Below are positions 38,197 to 45,326 of a DNA stretch of 64,000 nucleotides, in pieces. The notes beneath the pieces are model-generated. The model had not been told where the DNA came from, did not search any database, and saw only the letters and a program-made list of their open reading frames with translations. Location of the stretch: assembly GCA_021613535.1 (NCBI GenBank), contig CP075493.1, positions 6,324,001 to 6,388,000 of the forward strand, in the 5' to 3' direction. The number at the start of each line of letters is the position of its first letter. Positions within the stretch are counted from its first letter, which is position 1. Source of the stretch: Adineta vaga. Its lineage: Eukaryota > Animalia > Rotifera. The position numbers were made by a program, and so were the translations under genes.

Positions 38197-40110
38197 TTAC
38201 AATTTTGTTTTTACACGTTCGAGATGTTTTTTACATTTTAGAAGTTCGGGATGATTAGATGGCAATGACTGTTGTCCAATTTGTATAGCGTGTTCGAAAA
38301 ATGAACAGGCTTTTGAGTAGTTATTCATGTTTTCATACATCAAACCAATATTATTGTAGGATGCTGCCAAACTAGGGTGATTGGATGGAAGTGATTGTTG
38401 CTTGATTGCAAGGGCTTTTTCATGAGATAAAAGTGCATTCGAATAATCATCCATCTTTCTATACATTTCACCGATGTTGTTGAATGTGATACCTAAAACG
38501 GGATGATCAGGAGGAAGCGATTGTTGTTGAATTGTGAGAGCTTTCTCATAGAATATAAGTGCTTTTGGATAATCATTCAGAATATCATGTACATTACCGA
38601 TGTTGTTGTAGGATGAAGCGAGAACAGGATGATTAGGAGGAAGGATCTTTTGTTTGATGAAAATTGAATTTTCGTAAAGTATCAGTGCTTTATGATATTG
38701 TTTTTGGTTATATTTGATCCAACCTAATTGACCATATATTGATGCTTTGTCACTCTCATTTATTGTTTGTTCAAGCAGTTTATCATATACTTCTTCAGCT
38801 TTGTTATTATGACCCATCTGAATGAGTACTAAACCTAACCTATACCATCCTTCATTGTCTGGAAAACTCTCTTCTCGTATGCGATCCGTAAGTGCAACTA
38901 ATTCTTTGTCATTGTCACTAGTAAGTGTCAAATTTACTTCGTAGAGTCTATTATTTTCATTCATCAGTTTAATACCATCGATGCGAAACATACTATGCAT
39001 TGAAAATAAGACTTCATCTTCATTTGGAAAATAACTAATACCATGAACACACGCAAATGGTGTTGTTGATTGATTTGGATCTATCCTCATTACGAAAAGA
39101 ATTCCCACTGAGTTAGAATTTTCTGCAGCTTGTTGAGCAAATGTAAGGGAAACTTCTGGAATTTTAGTGGTAGATAGAAAGCTGTTAAATGATATCAAAC
39201 CATCTTTCGTTTGCATCAATTGTTCGAAATCTATCATTGATAAACCTTGACCACGATAAACTGTGAAGATTTGAGTAATACATTGTTCCTTATGTAAACG
39301 TTCAATGTGTCGATGAAGATCATTAATAAAGAAACCCATTCGCGTCATCATATCACTATCCATTATTCGTAATGCACGATTGAGCATTGAATATAAAAAA
39401 CAGTTATAAGTATACCACCATATTGGTGTTTTTTTATGGTAATTCTGTTCCAACTGATTAATATTGATCAATTCTTCTTTATTGTCAGAAAAGATCTCAC
39501 GACAATAGTCAATGTAGTCTTTTATGTGGTCATTGTTGAAGTCGATAGTTAAGAAAATCTCTTTGAGAATTTGTGTGTACATGAATGATGGATCTAATTG
39601 ATTCAAAATCGTTCCAGGTTGTACGAAACTTATGGACACCGCATTTTGTTCACATTGTTGAACTGCTTGTTTGATCGCTTCGCACATAGATGTGATTTCT
39701 GTGAACACGCCCTTTATTTTAGGCCATTCCTGAATCCAGTCTTCATGATGTTTGTTATTATCATATAAAATGAAAATCGAATCTACTTGAGACATGCTAT
39801 GTATACGAGGTACAATTTGCTGTTCAAAACAGCCTGAAATAATCATGCAGACCTTGTGATCTTCAATATTTTTCATGAATTCAATACATTGGTTACTATC
39901 TACATATATATTGATACCATTGATGATACATCGTAATTTAGTAGCGATGTTCTGATGATCTTCGTTCTTTCCATTGAAGTTCTTGTCTAACCATACTAAA
40001 AGTACATTTTGAACCTTCTGAATATTGAAACGTTGATGGTCATGTCGTTCTTCCAAACCTGTACATGTTTGTTGAGTTATTTCCATACTGTCTAAATTGC
40101 TATTTGTCAT
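38197..40110 (-). CDS. Intronless ADP-ribosyltransferase (R-S-E clade) domain plus TPR-repeat protein, 637 aa
   Basis: VYRGQ (R), SFLSTT (STS), NEDEVLF (ExE), preceded by IWWYT...LYSMLNRALR. C-terminal kinesin-light-chain-like TPRs (LPPNHPVLASSYNNIG). Confidence 0.9.
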   Translation of the reverse strand: MTNSNLDSMEITQQTCTGLEERHDHQRFNIQKVQNVLLVWLDKNFNGKNEDHQNIATKLRCIINGINIYVDSNQCIEFMKNIEDHKVCMIISGCFEQQIVPRIHSMSQVDSIFILYDNNKHHEDWIQEWPKIKGVFTEITSMCEAIKQAVQQCEQNAVSISFVQPGTILNQLDPSFMYTQILKEIFLTIDFNNDHIKDYIDYCREIFSDNKEELININQLEQNYHKKTPIWWYTYNCFLYSMLNRALRIMDSDMMTRMGFFINDLHRHIERLHKEQCITQIFTVYRGQGLSMIDFEQLMQTKDGLISFNSFLSTTKIPEVSLTFAQQAAENSNSVGILFVMRIDPNQSTTPFACVHGISYFPNEDEVLFSMHSMFRIDGIKLMNENNRLYEVNLTLTSDNDKELVALTDRIREESFPDNEGWYRLGLVLIQMGHNNKAEEVYDKLLEQTINESDKASIYGQLGWIKYNQKQYHKALILYENSIFIKQKILPPNHPVLASSYNNIGNVHDILNDYPKALIFYEKALTIQQQSLPPDHPVLGITFNNIGEMYRKMDDYSNALLSHEKALAIKQQSLPSNHPSLAASYNNIGLMYENMNNYSKACSFFEHAIQIGQQSLPSNHPELLKCKKHLERVKTKL

Positions 40111-40692: not shown

Positions 40693-41145
40693 CTATTGGT
40701 TGCCATCCTTTTTTAATCTACTTTTGGCAATCCAATTAAATAGAACTACTTGACAATTACGCATTGTTTTAGTCATTGAGAAATTCGCTTGTGCATTCAA
40801 ATTAGATTGTATATGTTGAATTTTTGTGGAGAATTTCTTTTTCGACTGTTTCCATTGACGATCAACAATCGATAATTGATCGTCAAGTAATTGTCGACTA
40901 ATATCATCAGTAATTGTTATTCCATCAACACTGAGCATATAAGATGGTATTACAGTCTTTGTAGATGAGTTTTCATTTCTATCCATTCGTGCAAATCCAC
41001 GTGCATTTGGAGATGATTGTTGAAATGTACATATTTCTCGATTTCGTTCATTTTCTCGTCGAAGAAACATGAGAAACGATCGAGAATCAAGATCATGTGT
41101 GAGTAAATCAATTGGTAATTCATCTGACAAAATATTTCTATACAT
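40693..41145 (-). CDS. Hypothetical 150 aa protein or gene remnant
   Basis: ATG-initiated ORF with host-like codon usage between the ART-TPR and TIR genes; no motif recognised. Confidence 0.35.
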   Translation of the reverse strand: MYRNILSDELPIDLLTHDLDSRSFLMFLRRENERNREICTFQQSSPNARGFARMDRNENSSTKTVIPSYMLSVDGITITDDISRQLLDDQLSIVDRQWKQSKKKFSTKIQHIQSNLNAQANFSMTKTMRNCQVVLFNWIAKSRLKKDGNQ

Positions 41146-41345
41146 GATAATTTTTTATACTCTTCGCGCTCATTTTACAATATCTTTTGTAGAAAAAATG
41201 CCATAAGACGAATAACGACAACTATGAACGTCAGGAAAAAAAACCCGTTGACATTGCATAACACCAATGAAATTCTCTTCGAGTTTCTTTTCTCTTTTCT
41301 TTTCTCATTTAAAAAACTTGCACTATATAAAAAGAAAACTCTTCA

Positions 41346-43741
41346 ATGGGTTGCGGTACGTCGAATAACGTCGTTAATAACGATACACAGCCTGTTTCTA
41401 ACGCTTCTTTTCCACCGGCATCAATACCGTCTCAACGACAACAACAACAAAATCAACGTGTAACAGAACACGTTGTAACTGCATCACAAACATCCAAAAC
41501 AGGTAATCTATCGTTAAACGTATTGAATTCATATTTAGAAAGAAAACAAATTTCTTATTTTACAGGTGAAATGTCGAACACAATGAATGTCCTGATAACA
41601 TGTCATACTGATCAACAAAATCTCGCTGAAATCCTACGTAAAACATTTACCAATCAAAATCTCGGTTGTTATATTCTTAATGAAACAAATCCACAATCAA
41701 TCGCAGCTCGAGCAAATCTTATTCAATGGTGTAATGCATTTATTGTTATTATTAGTCGTAAATATCAACAAACACCATACTGTATGGAAACAATAAATTA
41801 TGCGAAAGATTTACGCAAAGCAATTGTTGCTATTTATATAGAATCAAATTTTCAACCGTACGGTGCTTTAGGTGCTATATCAGCAAGTGCTGTTCTATCA
41901 TTAACATTGAAAAATAATCAAATTCCAGAAAATATGACTTCACAAATCATCAATGCTGTTTCATCACAAAAAACAAGAAAAAGTGGTAATAAAAATGTTG
42001 TTGATCCAGCACAGGTAGAATATTGTCATTCTTTTAACTATGTAATTACATTATATTTCTAGATGCCTAATGAAAGCGATAGTATGAAACTGATCGATGG
42101 TAATAATCCATGTACAATATTAATTTGTACAACCAATGATGGATCAAATGTAGCACAAATAATATACGAAGAGTTTCGTACAAAAAATGTAGATGTTGCA
42201 TTAGAAAATCTATCGAAAGCAAATTCATCTTCGAGTGTTCGACAATGTACTGTTTTCTTACCGATTCTTTCTTCTGAATTTGAACAAATACCAATATGTC
42301 AAACAGCATTTGAAAAAGCTCGTCGATTGCAAAAGCCTATTGTACCAGTAATAGCTATTAAAGATTGGAGGCCGGATGGATGGATTGGTTTAATTATTGC
42401 TGGAACTACATTTTTTCGAATATTTGATAAAAATAATGCATATAAGAAATTCTTCGATAGCAATCGAATGACAGATTTGACAGTAGAAGTTCAAGTAAGT
42501 AATGCATATGTATATCTGTTTGAAGTATTTTGTGTTTTAATTTCTAATAAAATAGCTTGCTTGTCAACCCCGTCCAAATCAAGCTGAACGTGAACAAAAA
42601 GAGATGATGGCATTAAAACAGAAGATTGAAGAATGTAAAAAGGAACTACAAACATGGCCACCAACGCGTAAAGAACGTTCAAACAATCCAACTGTTGATC
42701 GACAACCTGTTCGTGTTGAATTGTCTGAACCCAGTGCTAAACTTGCCTTTCATCATATTCATCATGAAATTACACGTATGGATATTAAAGCACCACCTGC
42801 TCTAATTGATGAATATGGTTTACCTAAAAGAAAAGAAATTGATTGTATGATTAGGTATTTGAAACGAATAAAACGAACAATTATATGTTAAATATATTCG
42901 ATTCTTTTAGTTATCAATGGGATCATCAACCATTTGTTCGCAAAGTTTTCGAAGACATGTCAATGCGTGAAATTAAAACTTGGTTTGATATATGGGGTTC
43001 TATGCAAGGCAATACCAACGACGCTATGGCAACTGGTTAGTGATAGAAAACAAAATTTTACTAATTGAACACTGCCTTTCTCTAACAGGTGTAGAATGTG
43101 CTAAAGTACTCCTTGTCTTCCTCTCAAAAGCCTATGTTCAATCTCCTAATTGCCTATTAGAATTTCGTTATGCTGTTAAACGTGGTAAAGCTTTTGTGAT
43201 TATTCGAGTTGAACCAAATATTCCAACGGAACAATGGATGCTTGAAGCAATTACAGGATTTCCTCAGTACGATGTCTATTCCTATGAAGATTTAGAGACA
43301 TTAATCAATGGTGTTCCAACAGTAAGAGGTTATTTTTTAAATGAATCATTGTATGTTATTCTTATTAGATTGATGTCATTATGCGCGGTACGTACACTTG
43401 CTCAAGCACAACCACGTGATATAATTAATGATTGTTCAGCTGAACTATTTGAACTACGTTCTCTTCTTGATGATGCACGTGATGCAATCTATGCTAATGC
43501 AGGAAAAAGTCGTTATAACACATGCACACGATGTAATCAACAATTCGATGAATTTACTAAAGGTGGTTGCAAAAAACATCGAGCGTATTACATGGGTGGA
43601 ACGATTCTAGAAGGTCGATGGATGTGTTGTCGACAACAAGCAAAAGATTCACCAGGATGTGAAGAATGTGATCATACAGATGCAGTTCGTGTTTTTACAC
43701 AAGATCCCAGTTATGGGACATGGACATGGCAACCAGCTTAA
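41346..43741 (+). CDS. N-myristoylated/palmitoylated protein with three TIR_2-like domains and a C-terminal BTK-type zinc finger, 7 exons
   Basis: MGCGTS start. TIR1 VLITCH...FIVIISRKYQQTPYCMETINYA; TIR2 ILICTT...FLPILSSEFEQIPICQTAFEKA...WRPDGWIGLIIAG; TIR3 DCMISYQWDHQ...WFDIWGSM...VFLSKAYVQSPNCLLEFRYA. Zinc finger CKKHRAYY...WMCCRQQAKDSPGC. Exons 41346-41502, 41566-42014, 42063-42494, 42556-42854, 42911-43035, 43089-43321, 43369-43741; the last junction is off by 2 nt. Confidence 0.85.
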
Positions 43742-44118
43742 AATGATAATGTTATTTATATAAAAAAAAGAATAATTCTACTATTTCTTGAATAAAGACA
43801 CAGATAATAGATTGATGTTTAAGTACTATTGTATGACAATCTTCTATTCAATATGTACGATTATCAAAAGACAAATGATTGATACTTAACATTTATATTA
43901 TCATTTATTTCCGAGAACTAGAATACTAATACAAGAAAAACCAAAATTAAAATTAAAAAAAATAAAACAATATCAATAATATGAAAATACAAAGATTATG
44001 TCAAGGAGAGTATTGTTTACTCTTCTCCAGAAATATCCATCGGTTCGAAAAGACTTGTATGAGGAGAAGAAATATCTTTCTAGAAACGGCAATATCTTAA
44101 CTATATAAACAAAACCAT

Positions 44119-45326
44119 CTAATCATAACTCACATTGACATCAGAAAATCTTTGTGATATTTTCGATGAAGTGTTTGTTCGAATTGGTTGAACATAATTG
44201 GCTGGTATTAATCCCATATGAATATGATCAATAGTACCCAAAAACCAACTGGATTTAGCGAATTGAAATGCTAAAAGGAAAAATCATACTGCCTATTTAT
44301 ATTTATTCTGCACGGCAATCGAAATAATGAAAAGATATAGGACTTAGTTTGTTTTCTGCACTACTATAAACATCTTACCCGGAGGTGCCAGATAAATCGT
44401 AGTACCGCGTGTAAATGATAGTTCATCCGAATTTTGAGCTACATAATCGTGAAGTGCAACGACACGTGCTTGTTTTGTGTCTTGTTGTAACCTATTGTTA
44501 TTTACTAAAAATTATGTTTTTTAAACATTTATTTAACTGAATAAAAATTTACAAACTTTGCTGTTTTTTTATGATCGAATTGAGAACTTTTAACATTAAC
44601 ATTGGTGTACCAAATGAGACAAGGAAAAATAGAGCAACAAGTAGACTAGATGATTGTCCATTTGTTGTTTTTGTTGATTCGGTTGTTTGTTGTAAACTAT
44701 GATAAATTGTCATCCATGAATCTTCAAATTGATCACTTTTTCGTAAATGAAAAACTTTTAATAAACGATGATAAAGAAATTTCATAAATCGATATAATAA
44801 AATTACTGGATACAATGTAGTTAGCTCAGATCGAAGTCTAGTAAAGTGATCAAATAAATCAATCATTGCACGAAATGATGTATAGATATTTGTAAATGTA
44901 GATTCAAACATATGTGATATAGAATGAAATGTTTGAATAATCGATTCAATAGAATTGAATGCTGAACGTGATTCATCTATTGCTAGTTGAGTGAAATTAC
45001 TCATAGGAGGATTCGATGACGATAAATAATGGTTATTGTAATAAGTTGGTTGTTGACTGTATGACGTGTTTGGATAATTCATTGGAGGATAAGGACCTAC
45101 ATGTCGAGATGATTGAGGAATGGTTCGTTGTGGTAGTGAAGGTGCTGCTGTACTTTGGGTTCGTCTAAAATGAATAGCAAGAAAATAATGAAGAACGTCA
45201 AGATACGAAAACTGTATACATAGATTCTACAGTGGGTACAAATCCATGGTTAGTTGTCTCAAAAAATGAAGTTAGTGGTTGATTAGTCATTGGTACTGTT
45301 GGTTGCCACGAATTGTCAGTATGCAT
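44119..45326 (-). CDS. PEX13: Peroxisomal membrane protein PEX13 (Peroxin-13 N-terminal domain plus SH3)
   Basis: ESRSAFNSIESIIQTFHSISHMFESTF...SFRAMI, FFLVSFGTPMLMLK, and SH3 VVALHDYVAQNSDELSFTRG...IYLAP...WFLG...GLIPANYV across canonical introns. Confidence 0.9.

Follow-up and report, generated by a model that had tools for sequence, protein, structure and literature searches.

A rotifer member of the TIR_2 and BTK (NG2-type) family in Adineta vaga: three TIR units, a predicted acylation signal and an extended zinc module in one chain

The stretch of DNA considered here, hereafter the window, comprises 64,000 nucleotides of contig CP075493.1 (positions 6,324,001 to 6,388,000, forward strand) of the bdelloid rotifer Adineta vaga (assembly GCA_021613535.1, 100.8 Mb over six contigs), with 30% G+C and short introns. 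Its plus strand carries gene I4U23_002034 at 41346-43741, with the ATG at 41346, the stop codon at 43739-43741 and seven exons. The protein of this locus has about 700 residues, is cytosolic and comes from an old, pan-eukaryotic family; the gene is a rotifer member of a family that has been listed but is functionally unstudied, and not a new kind of system. The protein deposited for it ('hypothetical protein I4U23_002034 [Adineta vaga]', here P0126) has 581 residues and, in an exon-by-exon comparison, contains the translation of every exon.

Splice sites were read from the sequence and then tested with contigs of four public runs placed on 41300-43800, namely X1 and X3 (one study), X5 (another study) and the DNA run X8; that X1, X3 and X5 are RNA is only a guess. 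Six introns were delimited (41503-41565, 42015-42062, 42495-42555, 42855-42910, 43036-43088 and 43322-43368). All of them are skipped in the X1 and X3 contigs, and the X5 contigs, which cover only 43084-43693, skip the last one. GT..AG ends were reported for five joints, and the sixth joint was placed differently, beside a two-base site that is discussed below. As the contigs are spliced, the gene is transcribed and processed. Additionally, a single X3 record (record 6) spans 42285-43747, so the TIR_2 and BTK parts lie in one transcript. The gene is made up as follows.

41346-41502, plus strand: exon 1, with the start codon, the MGCGTS start (Gly2, Cys3, Ser6) and a low-complexity Gln-rich spacer; the joint 41502/41566 is found in X1 and X3 contigs
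41566-42014, plus strand: exon 2, TIR1, with Thr (41790-41792) at the catalytic position and a conserved Glu (41787-41789) one residue before it
42063-42494, plus strand: exon 3, TIR2, with Ala (42306-42308) at the catalytic position and an invariant W..G motif (WIGLIIAG)
42556-42854, plus strand: exon 4, a helical linker with conserved IEECK..L..WPP and HH..TR, then the first strand of TIR3 (DCMI)
42911-43035, plus strand: exon 5, TIR3 from strand A to the BB-loop region (SYQW ... W.D.WG.MQGN), Pfam TIR_2 17.4 bits
43089-43321, plus strand: exon 6, the TIR3 core with S-x-N-C-x-x-E (Glu codon 43160-43162), Pfam TIR_2 26.4 bits
43322-43368, plus strand: intron 6, 47 nucleotides, GTAAGA..TATTAG, removed in X1, X3 and X5 contigs
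43369-43741, plus strand: exon 7, the last TIR3 helix, an acidic helix, the predicted two-zinc module (first Cys 43523-43525, last His 43673-43675), a conserved tail and the stop codon
43384-43385, plus strand: site of a two-base deficit in the assembly (AA after 43384), both bases being present in X1, X3, X5 and the DNA run X8

The Pfam scan of exon 4 returned no family at significance. As regards variation, the window gene and the public runs differ at about 28 single bases, taken as allelic, and X8 carries a 3-base ACG insertion after 41434, within the Gln-rich spacer.

After intron 6, the window reads ATTGATGTCATTATGC followed by GCGG, and every run that reaches this site has AA after 43384. 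The X8 contig at the site is unspliced and DNA-like, including part of intron 6, and two different flanking alleles occur at 43384/43385, both with AA. As assembled, and with intron 6 spliced, the frame shifts and meets a stop at 43417-43419, before the zinc finger; the deposited P0126 ends ...IDVIMRGTYTCSSTTT, exactly as this shifted frame predicts. The ohnolog on contig C5 (I4U23_026922, P0125, 675 residues) has an intron at the same place as intron 6 and an intact frame, and the orthologs of Rotaria and A. steineri read ...NGVPT-IDVIMQAVR... across it. In the window itself, the downstream frame is fully open, and its zinc module is 91% identical to that of the Adineta steineri ortholog. The two-base deficit probably arose in assembly or polishing, and it cuts short the A. 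vaga protein as deposited. Alternatively, the deficit would be real and the window copy a truncated allele or pseudogene, whose product would be a triple-TIR protein of 581 residues without the zinc module. The assembly itself and P0126 agree with this alternative, and the fact that contigs drop rare variants leaves room for a minor allele. By contrast, the AA found in all three contig sets of RNA type and in the DNA set, on two flanking alleles, argues against it, as do the open frame downstream and its similarity to A. steineri, and we regard it as very improbable. Whole-protein work was done on P0126 as deposited, of which residues 1-570 are the true sequence, and on its relatives, with separate searches for exon 7 (window:43385-43738 and window:43511-43738).

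The same site explains a frame that had been read as continuous over 43322-43384 in an earlier note made from the letters of this DNA. This segment is actually intron plus shifted exon. A single exon over 42992-43741 is ruled out by the splicing of intron 6 in three runs, together with the ohnolog and the orthologs; the unspliced frame is open by chance, as a result of the 47-nucleotide intron plus the 2-nucleotide deficit, and the 21 residues read from 43322-43384 are not protein. Among the splice pairs tried near 43311-43406, those at 43322-43368 (47 nucleotides), 43329-43368 (40) and 43322-43406 (85) are out of frame in the assembled sequence. The sole in-frame choice, 43329-43406 (78 nucleotides), was rejected because its acceptor is poor and no reads support it.

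The protein contains three TIR units. TIR1 scores 27.7 bits against Pfam TIR_2 (E 4.3e-6), just below the cut-off of 28, TIR2 matches weakly (14.8 bits) and TIR3, a typical TIR_2 domain, is split over exons 5 and 6, with the scores listed above, while P0126 as a whole reaches 99.7 bits. No unit was matched in the NCBIfam scan. When the units are compared with each other by hhalign, TIR1 and TIR2 align with 98.5% probability (E 3.6e-15), TIR2 and TIR3 with 98.4% (E 1.1e-14), and TIR1 and TIR3 with 93% (E 3.5e-7). AlphaFold models were made for the TIR1 and TIR2 units, with a predicted local distance difference test (pLDDT) of 91.5 and 91.9, respectively. The best structural matches of the TIR1 model are the TIRs of RPS4, RUN1, TRR-2, L6 and SARM1, at Z of about 13; in VIA-align, those of RPS4 and RUN1 reach Z 13.4, with a root-mean-square deviation of 2.8 over 127-130 residues. 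As the nucleoside-hydrolase folds DNPH1 and MilB score within one Z unit of the TIRs for this model, the fold call for TIR1 rests also on hhalign, on Pfam and on a PADLOC ThsB TIR-like match (E 4.4e-5). A search of the PDB by sequence with the TIR1 profile gave no significant TIR, the best match being a designed Rossmann protein (E 0.0024). For the TIR2 model, the top 50 VIA-align entries are all TIRs (Z 14.5-11.3), led by TIR-1 and SARM1 (Z 14.5-13.4), and the TIR of Mal is among the Foldseek matches. The TIR2 family profile finds the SARM1 TIR in the PDB (E 0.0017), followed by MyD88 and TIR-1, and the TIR3 profile finds the Cat1 TIR (E 1.6e-6), followed by MyD88 and RPP1. Units 1 to 3 are mutually homologous TIR-fold domains. 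The three tandem TIR units proposed beforehand are borne out by Pfam, hhalign and the models, including the expectation that units 1 and 2 would model as TIR folds (pLDDT of about 92, with TIRs leading in both).

The distribution of the family was searched with an exon 6-7 query against 1.84 billion representatives, which matched 85 proteins at E <=0.001, many of them of 600-800 residues and matched in their C-terminal part. The named members include the bdelloids Adineta, Rotaria and Didymodactylos, the sea anemone Actinia tenebrosa, the annelid Owenia, the nemertean Lineus and the flatworm Macrostomum; outside animals, there are the chytrid Obelidium, the oomycetes Phytophthora and Saprolegnia, and the cryptophyte Guillardia. 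No family match was seen in vertebrates or ecdysozoans in the searches made. Judged from these sequences, the family is old and pan-eukaryotic, and neither rotifer- nor animal-specific. This A. vaga genome holds two family copies. Additionally, a weak match (L004, at G000:C5:15467275-15467400 on the minus strand; E 1.1e-5, 48% identity) to query residues 113-154 lies about 3 kb beyond the ohnolog; the part of the query that it covers runs from a helix and linker through CTRC, with which the zinc module starts, and it looks like a fragmentary duplicate. One Rotaria sordida protein (P0115) has 904 residues, about 200 more than other members, with 82% query coverage, and may reflect a fusion of gene models or the presence of an additional domain.

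A combination of TIR_2, in one or two copies, with BTK has been listed as 'Novel Gene 2' (NG2) in sea anemones, with no further cases given apart from proteins of P. ramorum and G. theta (van der Burg et al. 2016, BMC Genomics 17:850, PMC5094078). The sea-anemone NG2 is under purifying selection, with a ratio of nonsynonymous to synonymous substitution rates (dN/dS) of 0.11 (PMC5094078). Proteins of Phytophthora ramorum and Guillardia theta fall within our family set, and so does a protein of Actinia tenebrosa (P0132), which matches the Rotaria ortholog with E 8e-125 over 96% coverage and aligns with the window protein over all domains, at 30% identity. With both domains and full-length homology to a sea-anemone member, the window gene fits the NG2-type TIR_2 plus BTK family. 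Consequently, the claim that the architecture is uncharacterised stands in one respect, as no member has been functionally studied, but TIR_2 plus BTK was already listed as NG2 in 2016. The NG2 paper differs from the present description in that it makes no mention of a third TIR, a lipid-anchor motif, a pattern of catalytic residues, an extended zinc module or a function, and it does not cover rotifers (PMC5094078). No description of this architecture was found in the papers covered here on the 'ecTIR-DC' classification, and the only accounts of triple or tandem TIRs that were met concern mollusc Tolls and Dictyostelium TirE. In a 2026 preprint, the TIRs of Rotaria sordida and Guillardia that showed activity come from proteins outside this family (A0A819KH97 and L1IYH1, respectively), and no family member was found among the tested constructs in the part of its Table S4 covered here (bioRxiv 10.64898/2026.04.20.719644). 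In the same part of that table, the second TIR of the Guillardia member appears with His at the site, as in our alignment, and with a 'no' in a column whose heading lies outside that part.

To describe constraint on individual residues, counts were taken over an alignment of 40 full-length family members. In the window protein, an ungapped hhalign alignment matches TPYCMET (TIR1) and IPICQTA (TIR2) with SPNCLLE (TIR3), placing Thr, Ala and Glu, respectively, at the catalytic position; all three units have an equal number of residues between the Cys and the following strand, and the TIR2 profile alignment puts E642 of SARM1 at this position. That only TIR3 of the window protein has Glu here, with Thr in TIR1 and Ala in TIR2, agrees with what had been read from the letters. 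In a diverse range of TIRs from animals and protists, catalysis requires a Glu at this position (bioRxiv 10.64898/2026.04.20.719644). Across the family, the TIR3 position (Glu512 in P0126 numbering) is Glu in 39/40 members and Asp in the remaining one. The surrounding S-x-N-C-x-x-E-x-x-Y-A is almost constant over Metazoa, chytrid, oomycetes and cryptophyte, with S, N, C, Y and A near-invariant, and W470, D472, G475 and M477 of exon 5 are also nearly invariant in the family consensus. TIR1 is never acidic at the canonical position (0/40) and has Glu one residue earlier in 34/40. In TIR2, most bdelloids have Ala or Gly at the canonical position and one has Thr, while Glu or Asp is found in seven members (Actinia, Owenia, Lineus, Macrostomum, Obelidium and two others); a Glu or Asp two residues after this position is present in 36/40. 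Both units carry conserved motifs, as P150 of TIR1 is invariant, and of the seven residues that are invariant over the entire protein, two lie in TIR2 (W309 and G316, in WLGL.IAG). TIR1 and TIR2 are consequently more than degenerate copies, and TIR2 keeps an acidic residue at the canonical position in the seven members above.

The window protein starts with MGCGTS. Proteins are directed to myristoylation and palmitoylation by a start of the type MG....S/T that has a Cys close by, and the acylation signal proposed earlier for this N-terminus is upheld as a prediction. All 12 bdelloid sequences of the alignment start with MGC, and 22/40 family members start with MG; the N-myristoylation pattern G-{EDRKHPFYW}-x(2)-[STAGCN]-{P} fits 21/40, from three supergroups including oomycetes. 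For instance, Actinia and Owenia start with MGSGSSK, the oomycete members with MGSAAST or similar, and Guillardia with MGFVGCFGC. In the Pfam scan of the window protein, no family beyond TIR and BTK was found, and no transmembrane segment or ectodomain was seen.

At the C-terminus of the window protein are CTRC and H..CC..C. These belong to a set of eight Cys/His residues that are invariant in 40/40 members, with the spacing C-x2-C-x11-C-x2-H-x15-CC-x9-C-x4-H. Pfam BTK (PF00779) is above its cut-off of 24 bits in 41/41 members, its motif being the H...CC...C core; in the window gene it scores 27.1-30.4 bits (28.4-30.4 for exon 7, with 28.4 on window:43385-43738). Against the PDB, the profile of the module matches ITK (8e-4), BMX, BTK and Tec, and then CHORD-containing protein 1 (2yrt) at E 0.045; this weak alignment covers 7/8 invariant ligands, including three of the four that lie outside the BTK motif. 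The H..WxCC..GC core is shared with the Btk motif of the Tec kinases (ITK, BMX, BTK and Tec). Tec kinases differ in having a PH domain beside that motif, whereas none adjoins the window module. Resemblance to CHORD proteins (CHP-1, melusin, RAR1) lies in the ligands aligned on 2yrt, and ESM Atlas gives CHORD as the nearest named clusters (score 0.93, a weak lead). By contrast, the spacing differs, with 9 residues from CC to C, as in BTK, and 15 in the aligned CHORD chain, and Pfam CHORD (PF04968) matched 0/41 members, even at E 10. The four extra ligands suggest a second zinc site, and the sequence points to a BTK-containing, CHORD-like module that is predicted to bind two zinc ions. The BTK-type finger previously assigned to this end is thus present, with PF00779 above the cut-off, but the module is larger than the BTK motif. 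An otherwise unrelated, TPR-like Cyanophora paradoxa protein of 1030 residues (P0063) has the eight-ligand module and the conserved tail at about 950-1030, together with a ZZ-type finger and no TIR; as it ends with the module, the latter occurs in other architectures as well.

Taken together, we tentatively propose, somewhat short of calling it probable, a single joint arrangement for these parts, in which the protein would be held at a membrane, TIR3 would cleave nicotinamide adenine dinucleotide (NAD+), TIR1 and TIR2 would gate this activity and the zinc module would dock a partner. The chain would be brought to the cytosolic face of a membrane by N-myristate on Gly2 and probably by palmitate on Cys3 as well. 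TIR3, as the sole unit with the catalytic Glu, would be the NAD+-cleaving or nucleotide-signal-producing unit. TIR enzymes become active on TIR assembly, and TIR1 and TIR2, which appear to be non-catalytic but constrained, could complete the active site through TIR-TIR contacts, in cis or between chains, and gate it in this way. Finally, the zinc module may dock a partner protein. With SARM1/TIR-1, the window protein shares the TIR fold and the Glu of TIR3 at the position of E642. It differs from them in its three TIRs per chain, instead of an octameric SAM ring, in its lipid-anchor motif and zinc module, and in the Asn that replaces Trp before the Glu. Neither ARM nor SAM was found in Pfam scans of P0126, P0125 and P0120, and the protein consequently lacks the ARM, tandem SAM and TIR architecture of a SARM1 ortholog.

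Several observations weigh against this arrangement. A Glu at the catalytic position is also found in TIRs for which no NADase activity was seen (bioRxiv 10.64898/2026.04.20.719644). Four residues before its Glu, at a place held by Trp or another aromatic residue in many active TIRs, TIR3 carries Asn. In the part of Table S4 covered here, one active Lingula TIR has Leu at this place, and a chytrid TIR with S-x-N-C-x-x-E (a likeness seen by eye, unaligned) carries no activity mark (bioRxiv 10.64898/2026.04.20.719644). Moreover, the models cover TIR1 and TIR2 as single units, and the MG start is absent in 18/40 family sequences. These 18, which begin directly at the first TIR strand, are mostly metagenome or unnamed records, and they may be shortened gene calls without the first exon, as exon 1 is separate in the window gene.

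Some of these observations would also suit a non-enzymatic membrane adaptor or scaffold, whose TIRs would only nucleate homotypic assemblies at the membrane, as in TRAM and Mal, with a structural role for the Glu of TIR3. TRAM (TICAM2) is N-myristoylated, and lipid-anchored TIRs are therefore already known, while Mal (TIRAP) is a lipid-binding adaptor. The MG....S start of the window protein resembles that of TRAM, and in both adaptors a TIR is brought to the membrane by an N-terminal lipid signal, although this likeness is one of analogy only. Both of them differ from the window protein in having a single TIR and no zinc module, and in being TLR partners specific to vertebrates. The profiles of TIR2 and TIR3 match the MyD88 TIR about as well as SARM1, and the Asn in place of the usual aromatic residue points in the same direction. 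In the part of the preprint covered here, the screen showed no activity for many animal TIRs that bear the Glu (bioRxiv 10.64898/2026.04.20.719644). By contrast, the TIR3 helix keeps its S, N, C, E, Y and A almost unchanged over eukaryotic supergroups, a pattern more in line with an active site than with the surface of an adaptor, and MyD88 lacks Glu at the catalytic position in the TIR3 profile alignment. We consider an adaptor somewhat unlikely, but it keeps this weight in view of the TIRs that are inactive despite their Glu, and of the Asn that TIR3 carries in place of an aromatic residue.

The part played by TIR1 and TIR2 in the proposed NAD+-cleaving arrangement could also be the opposite one. 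In the version of the earlier note, TIR3 would be a NADase held off by degenerate decoy, sensor or autoinhibitory TIR1 and TIR2 until a trigger arrives. This builds on the same pattern of Glu among the TIR units, on the precedent of SARM1 (in which the inhibition comes from non-TIR domains) and on the conservation of TIR1 and TIR2, which must hence be doing something. However, our data do not separate inhibition from activation, and extra TIRs in cis would fit co-activation at least equally well, given the need of TIR enzymes for TIR-TIR contacts. Furthermore, the Glu of TIR2 is kept in cnidarian, annelid, nemertean and flatworm members, and a 'decoy' would consequently not be ancestral. Autoinhibition seems to us quite unlikely. 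Gating by contacts that complete the TIR3 site can be taken further. The three TIRs of one chain might form a ready-made array, in which the silent TIR1 and TIR2 complete the TIR3 site, and the family might have served since early eukaryotes as a membrane-bound generator of an NAD+-derived signal, with docking or control by way of a CHORD-like zinc module of the HSP90/SGT1 type. This extension is unlikely as a whole.

TIRs are now known as enzymes in bacteria, plants and many animals. The present family offers a compact test case for how diverse architectures meet the need for TIR-TIR assembly, as one Glu-bearing TIR, two conserved TIRs mostly without Glu, a lipid-anchor motif and a predicted two-zinc module are found in one chain. 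It has been retained from cryptophytes and oomycetes to cnidarians and spiralians, and it has been listed but never studied functionally. Beyond the published description, the present analysis brings out a cryptic third TIR, a conserved motif for acylation, the residues that 40 members have at the catalytic position and the eight-ligand, CHORD-like extent of the zinc module.

Three open reading frames lie close to the TIR gene, all on the minus strand. The genes with ART-TPR and Peroxin-13 domains were set aside as functional partners, as adjacency in eukaryotes is no evidence of shared function. Between the ART-TPR and TIR genes, a frame of 150 residues (40693-41145) matches no Pfam family and may not be a gene. 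A frame at 44549-45082, convergent with the TIR gene, contains the N-terminal region of Peroxin-13 (108.5 bits). Finally, an intronless frame of 637 residues at 38197-40110, divergent from the TIR gene, matches ADPrib_exo_Tox (32.6 bits), ART (20.6 bits) and TPR_12 (164.9 bits), and it places another NAD+-using enzyme next to the TIR gene.

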